Origin: Pelomyxa schiedti
Taxonomy: Eukaryota; Protista; Evosea
DNA: 64,000 nt
Direction: 5' to 3'
Assembly: GCA_020536535.1 (NCBI GenBank)
Contig: JAHLWZ010000470.1
Coordinates: 1-64,000 of the forward strand
Below the pieces are notes generated by a model. The model made no database searches. It had not been told where the DNA came from and saw nothing but the letters and a program-made list of their open reading frames with translations. Both the position numbers and the translations under genes were made by a program. Positions 7,568 to 40,211 of the stretch are shown here, one piece after another (the first letter of the stretch is position 1; each line of letters starts with the position of its first letter).

Positions 7568-7950
7568 TTAACTTTGTAAACAAATCCACTCATCCCTAGG
7601 AGTAGGGATACTTTTCGGTTTCACAGTAATTTTGTGTTCTTTTTGCATGTGCTCAATAAAGGCATATTCTCGTACATACTCAAACTTGTGTTTCCATTTT
7701 TCATGAGTTTGTTGTTTCTCCTCAGCAATATGTAAGCATTTCTTGCATTTCCACACCAACCTTGGCTTTTTAGAAGTGTTTTTATCTTTCAATTGTGTTT
7801 GTGGGGGCCTTTTTCTGGGAAGAGCTTCTTCATGCAAATGTGTATTTGACTGTAATATGTTACTGTTTGACTGACTAATATCTTTAGATGCAGAGACAAC
7901 AGAGGATGGTTTGCAATGAGATGCCTTAGGGCTTCATAACTTTGCTCAGA
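7568..7950 (-). CDS. Probable C-terminal segment of the transposase with a C2H2-like finger, in a shifted frame
   Basis: Frame opens at ~7950 (SPKASHCKPSSVV...LHEEALPRKRP...WKCKKC...YAFIEHMQKEH) and overlaps the end of the 816-aa ORF. Confidence 0.5.
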
Positions 7951-10239
7951 CTTGAATGGGGCTATTTGGTAGCAATGAGAGCCCTTCTCATCAACATAGT
8001 CACAAAAATATAGACACCCACTGCCAATATTATCCCGGAAGTGCATTTGTTGTATTGTGCGCCTATGGTTTGCACTGTTGTTGATGCATAGCTCTTCACA
8101 TTTCGCCAAACAGCTATTGTACTCTTGCATTTGCTCAACTGACATCTTTTCTTGTAGGACTCCATGTTTTTTACTTGGTGGATTGCCCATTGCCAATACA
8201 TCCTCCATTGTGTAATGCATGCCATGCTCAGCATAATTCAGGCTTGTGTGTCGTGGAGTTGGAATGATGCAATCACATGACTTCAGTGCCTCACAGATAT
8301 GTACTCTCTGCTTCATGTTCATGAATTGGCATACACTAAATACTTCTTGAATAGCACGTGCTTGACTGAAAGTATTCTCTAGAAACAATGTTGACAGAGG
8401 CTTCATATCATGGAGAATAATATTGTATTCATGTTGTAAGAGGGCAGCAATTTTCTCAAAGCCATTGATTGTCTTTTCTAAACAGAAAAAAGCTGCCTGT
8501 TTGTAAAACCTTTCTTTCCTCTCCTTTGGTTTCTTGGGGGTAACTTTTGTTACAGTCAAAGATTTGAAGTACTCTAGAGCTTCCCTGAGTTGTGGAATTT
8601 TTTCAGATACAGGCTGTTTGTCATCCACAAATAGTGTATGTACTTTACTCACACACTCGAAGTACTTTACTGCCTCTAAAGAGTCTTTTGTGGTGGCAAA
8701 ACTTCGGAATAGAGGAAGCAAGGCATAAATAAGTTCAATTTCCCCATTTGCTTGCTTGTTAGATGGGAATAATGTATCATAGGATGTCAAGCCTCTGGCT
8801 TTAAAGACTTCTTTCCTTGGAGCTACAATCTGATGCATAGACCGCATTGTGAAACATATATCCTTTTCCACATCAGTGCTTAGGTAGTAATTCAAGGTGT
8901 AATTCCGGAATAGCTTCTCCATGTGTGGCACATCATAAACAATTTGCAAGTTAGGTTCAATTTTTCTAAGCTTTTGTTCCAGTGGTGTTGTTTTTCCTTT
9001 GTTGAAGCCATCACTCACAAGCCACAGTGTTGGTATGTCAGCTTCCTTAAGCGCTTTTAACACTTTATTAATACATTTAGAGACAGTTTCATTGTTCATG
9101 CTTTTGATGGGAAACTCAAACAGACAGTGGCGTGCAGAACCATCCCAAGCAACCCAAGCTATTTGCAAGATTTCTTTTGCCAGTTTTTTAGGTATTTTTG
9201 TATATTTTTTCTCCATTTCCTGATTCTGAATATCTGAGATAGGGATTCCTCCCAGAGTTGTTCCTACAAGCATTTTGGAGGTAGTGTCTATGACAAGTCC
9301 CTTCTGGACTTCCACTCCATCAATACAGAGTCCGCCAGGCTTAATTTGATTTTTTAACCCTGTCTTCAGCACTTTTACCCTTTTCCAGATGGACTCCATA
9401 CCAATCCCAAAATCAGGGGAGATTATTCTTTTTTGCAAAGTTGAGACTGCTGGCAATGGTATCCCCATCTTTGTTTTTGATTCTACTAAGTGTCCACCAG
9501 CCTGCCCTCTTTGTTTTTGTGCCTCTGGAATCCCACGGATCAATTCATATCCTTTCTTGTGGCAGTATGTGTACAGTAGCTGAGCCCATTGTGTGATTTC
9601 TGGCATGTATTTGATTTGTCTTCTATCATCAACTCTCATGTACTCCAGAAGCGCCTTAATCAGAACTTCACTGAAAACCAACTTCCCATTCTTGTACTCT
9701 TCTTCCAGGCACACTTCCAAGTTTTGCATGAGGTTTTTCTTTTCTGTTGCCTGCATGCTTTCTAACTTCTTTTTCAGGCTTTCTATTTCCACTATCAACC
9801 GAGTTGATTGTTCTTCAAGATTTTTGCAGTATGTGAACTGGCTAGGTGTCAAGTGACTCTTTGCCACACTCACTCCTGTTTGTTTATAGTAACAGTGCCG
9901 GAGATGCAACAGGTCATATAAATTATTGCACTCTTCACACCTCTTATGCAGGCAGTTTTTCACTCTTATGCAATGAGGGTGAGGTTTCAAAAATGAAAAG
10001 TAAGTTTCTAATTTGTTGTTCAGGATTCCAACTGGTTTTGCCTTGGATATTGAATGCATATTTTCCACTACAGTACAGCCAAAATGTTCCCATGTGAACT
10101 GGAAAAGTTCTGGGGAATCTCTTTTGCATATTCCAGTACAGTAAATCAGGTTGGTTTCAGGTTGTGCCTCCTTTACACTTCTCAGATTCTTTGTATCATC
10201 ACAAGTGGGACAAGCAGCTTGTAAGTGCTGGGGAACCAA
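7789..10239 (-). CDS. P-element/THAP9-like DDE transposase (816-aa open frame; true start unresolved)
   Basis: Motifs in canonical order: LCIDGVEVQKGL (D1), LVSDG (D2), YDVPHMEKLFRN (D-x2-H of the P superfamily), LSTLFLENTFSQAR (catalytic E). Preceded by a coiled coil and a Cys/His-rich N-terminus. Confidence 0.85.
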   Translation of the reverse strand: MVPQHLQAACPTCDDTKNLRSVKEAQPETNLIYCTGICKRDSPELFQFTWEHFGCTVVENMHSISKAKPVGILNNKLETYFSFLKPHPHCIRVKNCLHKRCEECNNLYDLLHLRHCYYKQTGVSVAKSHLTPSQFTYCKNLEEQSTRLIVEIESLKKKLESMQATEKKNLMQNLEVCLEEEYKNGKLVFSEVLIKALLEYMRVDDRRQIKYMPEITQWAQLLYTYCHKKGYELIRGIPEAQKQRGQAGGHLVESKTKMGIPLPAVSTLQKRIISPDFGIGMESIWKRVKVLKTGLKNQIKPGGLCIDGVEVQKGLVIDTTSKMLVGTTLGGIPISDIQNQEMEKKYTKIPKKLAKEILQIAWVAWDGSARHCLFEFPIKSMNNETVSKCINKVLKALKEADIPTLWLVSDGFNKGKTTPLEQKLRKIEPNLQIVYDVPHMEKLFRNYTLNYYLSTDVEKDICFTMRSMHQIVAPRKEVFKARGLTSYDTLFPSNKQANGEIELIYALLPLFRSFATTKDSLEAVKYFECVSKVHTLFVDDKQPVSEKIPQLREALEYFKSLTVTKVTPKKPKERKERFYKQAAFFCLEKTINGFEKIAALLQHEYNIILHDMKPLSTLFLENTFSQARAIQEVFSVCQFMNMKQRVHICEALKSCDCIIPTPRHTSLNYAEHGMHYTMEDVLAMGNPPSKKHGVLQEKMSVEQMQEYNSCLAKCEELCINNSANHRRTIQQMHFRDNIGSGCLYFCDYVDEKGSHCYQIAPFKSEQSYEALRHLIANHPLLSLHLKILVSQTVTYYSQIHICMKKLFPEKGPHKHN

Positions 10240-35634: not shown

Positions 35635-38109
35635 ATGGCAAGCACAAGTACCAGTACTGGTACCGCGACCTCCACTGCGTATGTTCCCTGTGCTTTCAAC
35701 GTGTTTAGACTCGTAACCATAATGATTTTTATTTTTATGCAGAAGGGATGACATTCTTGAAGTGGCGGCAATGGGCCGCAGGGGTATAGAAGTTGGGTAC
35801 TGCTACGATGCGCGAAGTGATAGGTTTTGGCGGGTTAGCTTGTGGAATACGTCGTCACTGGCCAGCCTCCGCCCTGTCCCTGAGGCAAGCCAGAAGGTGA
35901 AAGTCACAATTGAAAGAGACCTATCTGATCGCCTTGACGAACTTGATGTGTCTGCTGAGTTGAAGCTGTCTCTGTGTGCTGGGATGATTGATGTCTCAGG
36001 TTCTGCTCACTTTTTAAACAAGCAACTTGTCAGCACCAACACAGTGTGTTGAGCCCACACCTTGTTTCTTTTCCTCACAGTATCCAGGCACGAGTTGTGT
36101 TTACAATCAATGTGATAACCCACTGGATTGGATTGACAATGGACCAGCTTGGACAGGATAAAGATGGCAGGATGCTATTTGACCAGACCCAAGTCTTTGA
36201 CAATCAAGACCTCACCCACGTTGTGAGCCAGATCACTTATGGTGTGAATGGGCACTTCGTGTTTGATGTGGTCTCGAATGACTCCAAGGAAAGAAGGGAA
36301 ATCGAAGGGAAACTTGATGTCATGATCAAAAAGATACCACTGTGTGATATTTCTGGCAAAGCTTCATTGAACTTAACTGAAGAGGAGAGCACCCTCTCTG
36401 ACAGGATTTCTGTAGATTATGTTGGCGATCTCATCCTTGACGCACCTCCAACCACTTTTGAGGCTGCTTTGCATGCAGTGGGGCAGTTCACATCTGAAAA
36501 AATTCTCCATAGTGCAGTTCCATTGAAGGTGCAGCTCATGCCCCTTTCAAAGCTGATGCCAAATACTGTCCGCATCTGTCACAAAATCAGGAGTGACATA
36601 ATCCAAAGCTTGATGCAACTTCAGGGTGAAATTGAGCGAGTTATCGTCAACTTACATGCACTCAAGATGGATAATGCAGAGACTGTTCCCCCAGTAACAC
36701 AAGCATTAACAACCTTGGAATCTGCAGCAAAGGATCTGAAAGCACATTTGCAAGAACAGTTGCTTGCCAAGATTCCCCTCGTGAGGGGTGATGGAACAGG
36801 GAGGGAGGAGACTGCACTCCTTGATCTGTACACCTCTATTACTCAGTCCGCATTTCAACCTCATTACCTCCAGTCATATGCTGACAACCTCCATTACCAA
36901 GTGAAAGTATTAAACCAAGTCATTCAGGAAGCAAATGCCTCAAATTCTGAAGGGCAGCCTGACTTGCATATAATGAGTCTCCATGGTGTTAAGTCATCTG
37001 TTAGTGGGGATTTCATTGTTCTAAAACTGTCAGTTCCTTTTACCACAGATTACATGCAGCAGCTCTCTAAGAGGCCTCTCACATTCACAACCAAAATACC
37101 ACCAGATGCACCAATCCCATCGCCTGTCAAGTGGGAAGAAGATCCACCACTTTTAGCCAAGTTAGTGGAGTCATGCAAACTAGTTCACAGAGAAGCTGCC
37201 CAGTGTAAGTTGAAACCAATCTTCTGCTTGGAAAGTACAGATACTAGTCCCCACATTGAAGTGAGTTTTAGGAGGGGCATGACATGGAGGAGATTTGAGG
37301 AGCCCCCCACACCCAGAAACCTTGTAATCAGGCAGTGCAATGTTGGGTACCAGGTGACCTGGGACTCTGTCCCAGTGCAAACCCCCCCTTTGGGGGCTGT
37401 CTCATATAGGCTGGACGGAGCTCCATGGTCTTCTGCGTCTAATTTCCAACAATGGTACTTTGGCCCCAACTGCTCATACCTCCTCTACCGTGGACAAGTG
37501 CCTGCACACTCTAAACTTCGTTTGTGCTCTGTTATGCAAGCCACAGGTGAAGCCAGTGACTGGGTGTGTGCTGAGGTGGGTCAAATTCGCTTGGATCCAG
37601 CAAGTGCAAACAGGGGTGTTGTTCTTGAGCCTGATGGGTTGGGTTGCACTATACCTGGTACACCAGCAACTGTCGTGGCTGCCACTGAAGGTTTTATAAG
37701 TGGCTCACACTGCTGGGAATTCACACTTGAGGAAACTGAGCAATGGTGTCATGTTGGTGTCTGTTGTTCACCCTCCAGTGTCACCAGTGGGACTAACTTG
37801 GGAAGCATGTCATCAGGGTTTGCCATTATGGGCTGTTCAAACCGAGAGCAAGGGTCCATGTTTTTATGGCATAATGGCCAAGGCTTTGAGGATGGAATCC
37901 GAGTTTTCCTGCCAGGGGACAGGGTTAGGCTTACACTCGACTGTGCAAAGGGCACCTTGGAATACTGCATAAATGGCAACCTTATCTCTACTCTTGTGTT
38001 CCGGGGTAAGCTCAAGGAGTGTTGTGGGAGAGCACCACTTTTCCCTGCCTTTTCAAGTTACCGTGGTCCCCGGCCAACAAAATTCACCAAAATATCTTTT
38101 GACTGCTAA
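35635..38109 (+). CDS. Stonustoxin/neoverrucotoxin-like pore-forming protein (MACPF/CDC-like N-terminus, FN3-like segment, C-terminal B30.2/SPRY)
   Basis: EVAAMGRRGIEVGYCYDARSD, LDVSAELKLSLCAGMIDVSGSAHFL, THVVSQITYGVNGHFVFD, IEGKLDVMIKKIP..DISGKASL, PPTTFEAAL and AVPLKVQLMPL match SNTX-family blocks; SPRY motifs GFISGSHCWEF, GDRVRLTLDC, LFPAFS; two introns. Confidence 0.88.
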
Positions 38110-38379: not shown

Positions 38380-40211
38380 TTATTCGTTTACAGGCTTATA
38401 ACCAGCTTTTCGTTTTTGAGCAAGAGCCCATACTGAGATGACGATGGTGGGGATGAGGATGGCTACCCCAAGACCTACACATACTACAATGATGGAAACA
38501 ATTTCAGAGGGTGCTGTGCCATGAATTAGGGACTGAAAGTGTGGGCTGGAATTGATTACCAGTGAGAGAGATGACGGCAATTTTGCCCTTTTCCTCATCC
38601 GCGTCGGGGGCGCCAACTAGAAGCACAAAATCTTTCACCAGAACAGAGGCACCAAAGCCAGGCTGATTATCAACTGTAACAGTTTTGGGACTCTTCCATT
38701 GAGAATCCTCCCACCCATAGGCCACAATTGATTGAGTTGAATTCGATGAGGCAACGAGTTTCTACAACAAAGTTAAAGATTGAAAAAAAAAAAACTTAAT
38801 AAAAAGCATACATTGGGGTAATCAACATTAAAGCCATTATAGCCTTCTGTGTCATCAGTACATAGTGTTCCCTCATGGGTCCATGTAGCACCTGGTTACG
38901 AAATGCCTTTCACATTAAATCCTATCCACTGCCTCCCAACCCCGTTGGATACTTCCCAAGAAAGTAGAAAGACACACCATTATTAGAGAGGCTGAATGTT
39001 ATTACACACTGAGGTGTGTCAGCAAGGGCAACGAGATACTTGATCCCATCGCAAAGCTATCCAACATTAAAGGAGCGAAAAAGTAGTAATAGTAAGACCT
39101 GAATTGCTGAGCCCATATTGGTAATCGATTTTCCATTTATAGTGAAATCACTGCCACACTTACGAGAAAGGAGAGTGGCAGAATTAGTCCTATTGGCAAA
39201 GACAGAGTATAGACTGATACAACCGCCCGAGCCAGCTGCGGGCTCCCCGACGGCAACATATGTTGTTCCTGTTCGCAGTTTAACCCCTATGTTATTAGAA
39301 GTGAGATACCTTTAACATCCCCAGAAACAGATACAGAGTGGCCAAACAAACTACTGGTCGTGGTTTGTTTAGTAGGAAGAAGAAGGCTATGAAGTGCTAG
39401 GGTATCGTTGATTGCGGTATAAAGTGTTACCGCCTGATGAGTATGAGTATGTTAGGTCGTTTTGAGAAAGAATCTTTTTACCCCGGAAGTGGCGGTATAA
39501 GGTGATACGTGTGAAGTAGGAGAACCAACAACTACAAGTGCATCACCAGATTCATCATCTTCTAAAGCTGCCATACTGGCTCCAAAAGCTAAAACTATGT
39601 TAAGTCCTCCAGAGGAACATGGAACTTACATCCAATTACTGTTGAGTTTATTACATCAGGAGTGGGAAGTAAAACGCCTGTGGCAGAGTTTTTCTTGAGA
39701 GTGTACAAAAACAAAGAGTTGTCTGCTGTGTTCGCATATCCACTTGGTGTTGGAATAGAGGCGAAGACTCGAGAGACTGAGATGGTAGACATTATTACAG
39801 TTGCGTTCTATCAATGATGGTGTTCTTAAGGTATAATGGCGGTAACACAAAATTTATCTACCGGGTAAATTGCAGAGACGTCCAATGTGAAAATTCGGGT
39901 GAAGAAAACTCCTTGTTCAGGGGCATCATAGCCATGCAGCAGTCCCCCAGTGCTGGTCACAAACCTTTCCCACAATTCAGTTAGCAACGCCAACATCGGG
40001 CAACGACGGCGAGTAAAGCAAACGAGATCCCGAATCACCTCAACGTGTTGTTGGAGCTCAAGTGCGCAAACTGCGATATGTAGCGGCCCATTCTCCCGCC
40101 CTCCGGAGCGGCCGATGGCGGCTTTACGTAACTCTCAACCAACCACGAGTCTACGGCAACAAGGCCGCACAATAGTACGCACAACAACCGACACACGGAC
40201 GACGCCACCAT
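38380..40211 (-). CDS. Type I membrane protein with FG-GAP-like propeller repeats
   Basis: Signal peptide MVASSVCRLLCVLLCGLVAVDS; FGASMAALEDDESGDALVVVGSP, FGHSVSVSGD, VAVGEP and FGASVLVKDFVLLVGAP; C-terminal TM helix and tail KRKAGYKPVNE. Confidence 0.75.

Follow-up and report, generated by a model that had tools for sequence, protein, structure and literature searches.

Stonustoxin (SNTX), the pore-forming toxin of stonefish, consists of an alpha and a beta subunit that are about 50% identical to each other (PMC10566576), and the absence of a signal peptide is a trait of the whole SNTX family, venom toxins included (PMC6114736). Opinion is growing that the SNTX-like proteins of fish without venom have a part in immunity (PMC12107551). 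In the literature that we searched, stonustoxin-type pore formers were discussed only in animals (venomous and non-venomous fish, platypus, annelids, nemerteans and cnidarians) and no publication linked stonustoxin to amoebae or to any other protist, the key structural paper on SNTX lying outside that search. Among the Archamoebae, saposin-like amoebapores are the only pore formers mentioned in the Mastigamoeba genome paper (PMC8136499).

In this work we analysed a gene of the archamoeba Pelomyxa schiedti located on the forward strand, at positions 35635-38109, of a 64,000-nucleotide stretch of contig C470 (JAHLWZ010000470.1), referred to below as the window. Sequence, domain order and predicted fold together supported the proposal, made in a first-pass annotation from the letters alone, that its 788-residue product (P0001 in the public record) is an intact stonustoxin-type protein of the MACPF/CDC class, with FN3 and SPRY domains, in a protist. 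The fold, the family and the likely mechanism were known already; the lineage, Amoebozoa, is unexpected. The reading that we prefer, with a probability of roughly 0.6, is that of a native and intact P. schiedti gene encoding a leaderless, soluble stonustoxin-type MACPF/CDC pore former, which would bind its target through a C-terminal head, oligomerise and form a pore, and would act against prokaryotes.

Gene structure and homology to stonustoxin

The gene extends on the + strand from an ATG at 35635 to a stop codon ending at 38109 and contains three exons. Exon 1 (35635..35678, +) begins with the ATG and encodes residues 1-15, a Ser/Thr-rich leader that, according to its hydropathy, is not a signal peptide. 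Intron 1 (35679..35742, +; 64 nt, GT..AG) was placed by tblastn and by an intron at the same position in a paralogue on contig C885. Exon 2 (35743..36043, +) encodes residues 15-115, recognised by phmmer, and by Pfam only below its cut-off, as the first half of the MACPF/CDC domain, and is separated by intron 2 (36044..36087, +; 44 nt, GT..AG) from exon 3 (36088..38109, +), which encodes residues 116-788 and the stop codon in a frame that is open throughout. The 673 stop-free codons of exon 3 are far beyond chance in DNA of about 47% G+C. When P0001 was compared with the window by tblastn all three exons were recovered with 100% identity, confirming exactly at 35635-38109 the intact, intron-containing gene without internal stops that had been noticed initially, with two GT..AG introns that preserve the frame. 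An alternative intron 2 of 35 nt (36046-36080), which would add three residues to the product, was rejected because the 44-nt version aligned without gaps to both the paralogue and a turtle homologue.

The spliced gene was searched exon by exon, and the full-length analyses made use of the public record P0001. In phmmer searches exon 2 matched residues 3-97 of stonustoxin beta (PDB 4WVM_B; E 3e-8), and exon 3 matched residues 127-371 of the same subunit (E 1e-26) as well as stonustoxin alpha (E 9e-25). A profile of this protein and its three P. schiedti paralogues matched 4WVM_A with an E value of 3e-35, the alignment reaching some 40 residues into the toxin's thioredoxin domain. Pfam Stonustoxin_helical (PF21109) reached 30.2 bits on P0001, for a cut-off of 27. 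The first-pass annotation had confined the conserved SNTX blocks to the first ~330 residues; the homology itself stood, whereas its extent had been underestimated, because it reaches approximately residue 400 and continues more weakly through the thioredoxin-like domain to about residue 517.

The canonical MACPF signature is Y/W-G-T/S-H-F/Y-x6-G-G. P0001 carries only the reduced, SNTX-type form T-H-x7-G, and stonustoxin itself, as seen in its phmmer alignment with exon 3, is likewise without the full canonical signature. The counterpart in P0001, T158-H159-x7-G167 (36214..36243, +), was localised in a 68-row family alignment, in which G167 was invariant and T158, H159 and Y166 were at least 90% conserved.

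Predicted fold of the N-terminal half

The AlphaFold2 model, obtained from this family alignment and without templates, was confident at residues 16-520, with block means of the predicted local distance difference test (pLDDT) of ~70-97, most of them above 85, and was poor in the tail. The best Foldseek match of the model was 4wvm_B (E 4.5e-29), with 4wvm_A, followed by the MACPF domain of Toxoplasma PLP1, perfringolysin O, pneumolysin, MPEG-1 and complement C8. In VIA-align, the SNTX structure was again the best match: 4wvm_B gave a Z of 23.7 with 502 residues aligned across model residues 18-756. Many cholesterol-dependent cytolysins (CDCs) gave a Z of ~11, with a root-mean-square deviation of 3.6-4.0 Å over ~215 residues (model residues 14-272), and MPEG-1, C8, C9 and perforin gave Z values of 7.5-9.2.

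The MACPF/CDC-type pore-forming domain covers residues ~16-282 (35744..36588, +, spanning intron 2), a region with pLDDT above 85 matched in VIA-align and Foldseek. In the model, two helical clusters (residues 72-114 and 178-222) flank the sheet strands 60-71, 115-130, 159-177 and 223-228/259-267 and are in the position of the transmembrane hairpin (TMH) regions. The TMH1-like cluster (residues ~72-114; 35912..36040, +) contains helices 75-81, 86-94 and 101-107 between sheet strands, and the TMH2-like cluster (residues ~178-222; 36274..36408, +) contains helices 181-196 and 213-221. Within the first 520 residues, the period-2 (beta-type) amphipathic signal is highest in these two clusters, with its maximum at residues 80-86 of the TMH1 cluster and further peaks at 184-187 and 201-202 in the TMH2 cluster. 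Hence the bent MACPF/CDC sheet and the TMH regions, on whose presence the initial proposal had been made to depend, were both found in the predicted model. The pore-forming domain is followed by a FAT-like helical domain (Stonustoxin_helical, PF21109) at residues ~283-400 (36589..36942, +), with four long model helices between residues 284 and 399.

Domains of the C-terminal half

Residues ~401-517 (36943..37293, +) probably form a thioredoxin-like domain without a CxxC motif, modelled as alternating strands and helices with a pLDDT of ~75-95. These residues align with the Pfam Thioredoxin_11 region of the turtle homologue (P0003) and are covered by the structural alignment to 4wvm_B, whose own thioredoxin-like domain presumably lacks CxxC too. 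An FN3-like domain at residues ~518-612 (37294..37578, +) comes next. Although Pfam fn3 was not significant on P0001 itself, the FN3-like stretch seen in the first reading could be verified by a column-for-column alignment with the first, Pfam-significant FN3 of P0003, and it formed seven strands in a separate model of the tail. The SPRY domain (PF00622), a putative target-recognition head, occupies residues ~613-788 (37579..38106, +; Pfam envelope 656-773) and scored 38-40 bits in Pfam, for a cut-off of 26.3. Exon 3 also matched the SPRY domains of TRIM67 and TRIM9 in phmmer (E 1e-4 to 5e-4). The tail model (pLDDT 60) showed the seven strands and then a SPRY sandwich; its best Foldseek match was the FN3 and SPRY region of CRLF3 (6rpz; E 2e-8, 286 columns), and many SPRY domains came next. 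The domain order of the protein is MACPF/CDC, FAT-like helical, thioredoxin-like, FN3 and SPRY.

A B-box, TRIM-like protein encoded elsewhere in the P. schiedti genome has a tail with 38% identity to the FN3 and SPRY tail of P0001. To the turtle SPRY the P0001 tail showed almost no similarity. Because the tail is nearer to the TRIM-like protein than to the turtle domain, the head of P0001 may have been exchanged within the Pelomyxa genome, as far as sequence comparison can tell. A word-based protein search with the tail alone returned only the query itself. The TRIM-like gene, which encodes a B-box zinc finger, an FN3-like stretch and a SPRY domain, is present in two near-identical copies, on contigs C797 (L006, 31-2337) and C2200 (L005, 327-1562).

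Public record

A word search with exon 3 retrieved P0001 (788 residues, P. schiedti, from the 126-kb contig C470) under the name "NADPH oxidase 4". This name was rejected: Pfam, at E values up to 1, found no ferric-reductase, FAD-binding or NAD-binding domain, and P0001 is without a membrane segment. Because NADPH oxidase-type domains and a membrane segment are absent the name is unsupported and, judging by domain content, is an annotation error. The gene is not new to databases, as it has already been deposited under this wrong name, and two of its paralogues have been automatically named "Stonustoxin subunit alpha". No signal peptide or membrane segment was found in P0001, the maximum hydropathy over 15 residues being 0.63 in its first 60 residues. 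The lack of a signal peptide pointed out by the first-pass annotation was in this way corroborated. For the cytosolic or phagosome-facing role suggested from it this counts for little, because the whole family, venom toxins too, is without a signal peptide (PMC6114736) and its absence says little about location.

A family of four genes in P. schiedti

A six-frame search of the whole 52-Mb assembly disclosed four loci with the pore-forming part, on contigs of 59-126 kb, and the four paralogues are deeply diverged. Besides the present gene on C470, which has two introns and a tail of FN3 and SPRY, there is a gene on C885 for a protein of 646 residues (P0002, "Stonustoxin subunit alpha"), with FN3, without SPRY, and with two introns at the same positions as those of the C470 gene. 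A search for a partner paralogue had been suggested at the outset, and P0002, with 57% identity to P0001 across the core that was compared, is such a candidate. The gene on C590 (L004, 1411-3318; P0004, also "Stonustoxin subunit alpha") has no introns, and the gene on C414 (L007, 1504-3345) is recorded as a "hypothetical protein" (P0005). In both of these a Phage Tail Collar domain replaces FN3 and SPRY (Pfam E 5e-12 in P0004 and 2e-12 in P0005). Tail-collar proteins of Synechococcus phages aligned with 97% of the P0005 tail at 40% identity (E 1e-20), and this tail had matches in 958 phage records. Among the 158 family proteins fetched, only P0004 and P0005 carry this head, and the collar-headed paralogues are a new variant of the family. 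Because two paralogues bear a head of the phage tail-fibre type instead of SPRY, the four sequences suggest a pore-forming chassis with interchangeable targeting heads.

The first ~55 codons of the C414 paralogue (L007, ~1380-1510), equivalent to the start of the MACPF domain, are out of frame with the long open reading frame (ORF). A frameshift, an indel in the assembly or an unusual intron could account for this change of frame, and the public model starts at an internal Met.

Relatives in other organisms and phylogeny

An exhaustive profile search gave 1106 clusters at E values up to 1e-3 and 115 at E values up to 1e-30. The four Pelomyxa proteins scored above 600 bits and the next best single-copy proteins about 150-160 bits. 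Word-based protein searches (8000 candidates) gave one outside match among the matches listed. The turtle protein P0003, annotated as 'stonustoxin subunit alpha-like', was 29% identical to P0001 over 437 residues (E 1e-51). When the 30 best-scoring clusters were looked up, the named relatives were all animals (three fishes, tuatara, frog, lizard, lobster, soft coral, tardigrade and rotifer) and the remaining ones were metagenome or read-archive assemblies without a taxon. Identity of the Pelomyxa proteins to the animal proteins was 20-30%. SNTX-type clusters are also listed in Ascomycota by the ESM Atlas.

Trees were constructed with FastTree (151 rows) and with IQ-TREE (52 rows, PMSF mixture model, quick search), without an outgroup and with most rows lacking a taxon. 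In both of them the four Pelomyxa proteins formed one clade (support 99) attached outside all labelled animals. FastTree placed the environmental MACPF-FAT-FN3-GTPase proteins P0107 and P0128 next to this clade, weakly (support 85), and in the IQ-TREE result the same two proteins branched off first on the side of the animals. Apart from these two, none of the 146 non-Pelomyxa clusters among the top 150 grouped with Pelomyxa. The remaining order (coral, tardigrade/rotifer, lobster, vertebrates) was roughly that of animal phylogeny. A recent transfer from vertebrates was rejected, the approximately unbiased (AU) test excluding a Pelomyxa clade joined to the vertebrate-containing clade with p 0.005 for a group that was defined after the tree had been seen. 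The phylogeny against animal homologues recommended in the first-pass annotation thus left Pelomyxa outside the labelled animals.

The environmental or eukaryotic proteins P0107 (L010, from Logan SRR6078209), P0128, P0012 and P0020 combine an SNTX-type MACPF-FAT(-THX)-FN3 core with an AIG1/septin-like GTPase; for P0107 and P0128 the records list DUF8206 in addition. A genome search for such an SNTX-GTPase fusion in Pelomyxa yielded none, only the same four loci and unrelated GTPase genes.

Origin of the gene

The P. schiedti genome was determined from whole-genome-amplified single cells of a polyxenic, polyeukaryotic culture (PMC8887013). This, together with the fact that all the named relatives are animals, would fit a contaminant origin, in which a different eukaryote in the culture would be the source of C470 and of the contigs with the other three paralogues. 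Such an origin, which the first-pass annotation had itself raised, was judged unlikely, and we give it very little weight: codon usage is uniform along the neighbouring genes of the 126-kb contig and that of the C470 gene, like its G+C content at third codon positions, resembles theirs; a transposon on C470 is common to other contigs of the assembly; the four paralogues form a deep clade on four contigs, with no more than ~30% identity to any sampled animal; a second gene family of the assembly also contains the FN3 and SPRY module; and the assembly went through decontamination and contains few duplicated BUSCOs (PMC8887013). The neighbouring genes contained no Pfam families informative for a taxonomic check. 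Still less credible is a decaying or silent gene, whose ORF would look intact after its expression had been lost. The frame change in the first ~55 codons of the C414 paralogue would be in line with it, and an exact-sequence look-up of P0001 for a transcript contig returned no record, but the 788 stop-free codons, the precise frame-keeping introns and the retention of family-invariant residues argue against decay, and transcriptome data were used in refining the public gene models (PMC8887013).

If the gene is native, it could still have reached the Pelomyxa lineage by an old horizontal transfer, the donor being an animal of an early-branching lineage or a eukaryote not yet sampled, followed by duplication and head swaps. 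We regard this as possible, somewhat short of an even chance. It is favoured because introns are few (two in the C470 gene and none in the C590 paralogue, for a genome mean of 7.4 per gene; PMC8887013), and it would agree with the exclusively animal identity of the named relatives, with the failure of the other top clusters to group with Pelomyxa, save weakly the two environmental proteins, with the domain order shared with vertebrate SNTX-like proteins and with the inferred horizontal movement of SNTX-like genes between teleosts (PMC12107551). However, attachment outside the labelled animals and an animal-like branching order are predicted by vertical descent as well, the identity to animal proteins is just 20-30%, and the tree has neither an outgroup nor a taxon for most of its rows. 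Antiquity of the SNTX branch is favoured because of the attachment point of Pelomyxa together with the fungal SNTX-type clusters, according to which the branch may predate animals. Viral contigs were considered as a potential vehicle of transfer, and within the patterns that the IMG/VR search could use no relative turned up among them.

Two further features of the window were observed. The long ORF of a P-element-like transposon lies at 7789-10239, and because partial copies 84-99% identical to it occur on three other contigs (C3651, C770 and C5096), its family is active in this genome or was so until recently. Just downstream of the SNTX-type gene, a short ORF on the complementary strand (38380-38616, -), with a hydrophobic stretch resembling a membrane span followed by basic residues, probably represents the final exon of a gene for a membrane protein.

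Proposed mechanism and role

According to the preferred reading of P0001 as a pore former, the C-terminal SPRY head would bind the target, after which the MACPF/CDC domains would join monomers into an oligomer; this could be a mixed one that includes the C885 paralogue (57% identity), in the manner of stonustoxin alpha and beta. The TMH1 and TMH2 clusters would then unfold into amphipathic beta-hairpins, giving rise to a beta-barrel membrane pore. The role of the protein would be defence against, or the killing or control of, prokaryotes eaten or housed by the amoeba, a role suggested because two paralogues carry phage-type heads. In P. schiedti a Syntrophus and a methanogen live free in the cytoplasm, vacuoles contain a clostridial bacterium that is probably a parasite, and the amoeba probably eats bacteria (PMC10579272). 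A role against prokaryotes fits both these inhabitants and the likely bacterial diet, and it agrees with the immune function increasingly ascribed to SNTX-like proteins of fish without venom (PMC12107551).

Several observations weigh against this reading. Pfam MACPF_SNTX (PF24674) scored only 17 bits on exon 2, below its cut-off, and had no match on full-length P0001 nor on the first 204 residues of exon 3. In P0001, Pfam called no thioredoxin-like domain and did not detect PRY (PF13765). The fold match follows in part from the family alignment behind the AlphaFold2 model, and the tail model was of low confidence (pLDDT 60). The proposed partner, P0002, is encoded on another contig (C885). Finally, no activity is known for the majority of SNTX-like proteins from sources other than venomous fish, and their status as toxins is questioned by some authors (PMC10566576). 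As for MACPF_SNTX, we judged its failure on P0001 as a weakness of the Pfam model, because the turtle protein, a bona fide homologue, reaches just 37 bits; the C414 paralogue, with 36 bits, was above the cut-off. Family counts drawn from PF24674 will underestimate the range of the SNTX branch.

The most serious functional rival would be a cytosolic sensor or scaffold, in which SPRY recognises a ligand and the MACPF/CDC domain mediates assembly or signalling without lysis. The closeness of the SPRY tail to the B-box protein of the same genome and, among solved structures, to TRIM9 and TRIM67 would be expected of such a protein, as would a leaderless and soluble product; SNTX-like proteins of non-venomous species are without demonstrated lytic activity (PMC10566576), and other non-lytic MACPF proteins exist, for example astrotactin-2. 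Nevertheless, neither the TMH1 nor the TMH2 cluster is shortened, it is in these clusters that hydrophobic residues alternate most strongly in the protein, the T-H-x7-G signature is conserved, and the paralogue heads are typical of binding to bacterial surfaces, with which attack fits better than signalling. We therefore considered a non-lytic function unlikely next to pore formation.

Going further, we offer with considerable reserve the proposal that modular, leaderless SNTX-type pore formers bearing SPRY, no head or a phage collar may serve as cell-autonomous immunity or symbiont control directed against cytoplasmic and vacuolar bacteria and archaea. If this were true, antimicrobial defence would be the ancestral job of the SNTX branch, older than animals and later recruited into fish venom.

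The four genes, an intact family in an anaerobic amoeba, bring Amoebozoa into the SNTX branch of the perforin superfamily. The paralogues are distinguished chiefly by the targeting head, two of the heads being of the phage tail-fibre type, and they reside in a single cell with known prokaryotic inhabitants, where the ancestral, presumably antimicrobial, role could be tested. The family bears as well on the question whether the SNTX branch is ancient or was spread by horizontal transfer. In practical terms, the public name of P0001 is wrong and Pfam MACPF_SNTX is too weak to detect this protein.

Comparison with known pore formers

Stonustoxin and neoverrucotoxin (alpha and beta, 4WVM) share with P0001 the N-terminal MACPF/CDC domain, the FAT-like helical domain, a probable thioredoxin-like domain without CxxC and the C-terminal SPRY, and a signal peptide is absent there and in P0001. 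The P. schiedti paralogue, with 57% identity, is of a divergence comparable to that between the two stonustoxin subunits (~50%), whereas the identity between stonustoxin and P0001 is only ~25-30%. P0001 differs from stonefish SNTX in having FN3 between the thioredoxin-like domain and SPRY and in that PRY was not detected. In contrast to the stonustoxin subunits, which carry SPRY, the putative Pelomyxa partner is encoded on another contig and has no SPRY. The stonefish is venomous, whereas the host of P0001 is an anaerobic amoeba without a venom apparatus.

The best full-length relatives are the non-venom SNTX-like proteins of turtle, lobster, coral, tardigrade and rotifer, whose function is presumed to be immune. 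The turtle protein has the same domain order as P0001, including FN3 after the thioredoxin-like domain, an FN3 before SPRY being present in many SNTX-like proteins and not in stonefish SNTX. It differs from P0001 in having two FN3 domains, instead of one, and a PRY and SPRY pair. The Pelomyxa clade lies outside all labelled animal SNTX-like sequences, and animal SNTX tails are more distant from its SPRY tail than is the B-box protein encoded in the same genome.

Amoebapores and other saposin-like pore formers of Entamoeba and Mastigamoeba are antibacterial effectors of Archamoebae (PMC8136499). They are small, helical, saposin-like peptides delivered to phagosomes, with an unrelated fold and no homology to P0001, to which their ecological role could nonetheless be analogous. 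From perforin, complement C6-C9, the CDCs and Perforin-2/MPEG-1, P0001 is set apart by the lack of significant sequence similarity, of a signal peptide, of a membrane anchor and of CDC domain 4, and by different accessory domains. With all of them the predicted structure of P0001 shares the bent sheet and the two helical clusters, which in those pore formers turn into beta-hairpins (Z 7.5-11), and the antibacterial role proposed for it would parallel that of MPEG-1.

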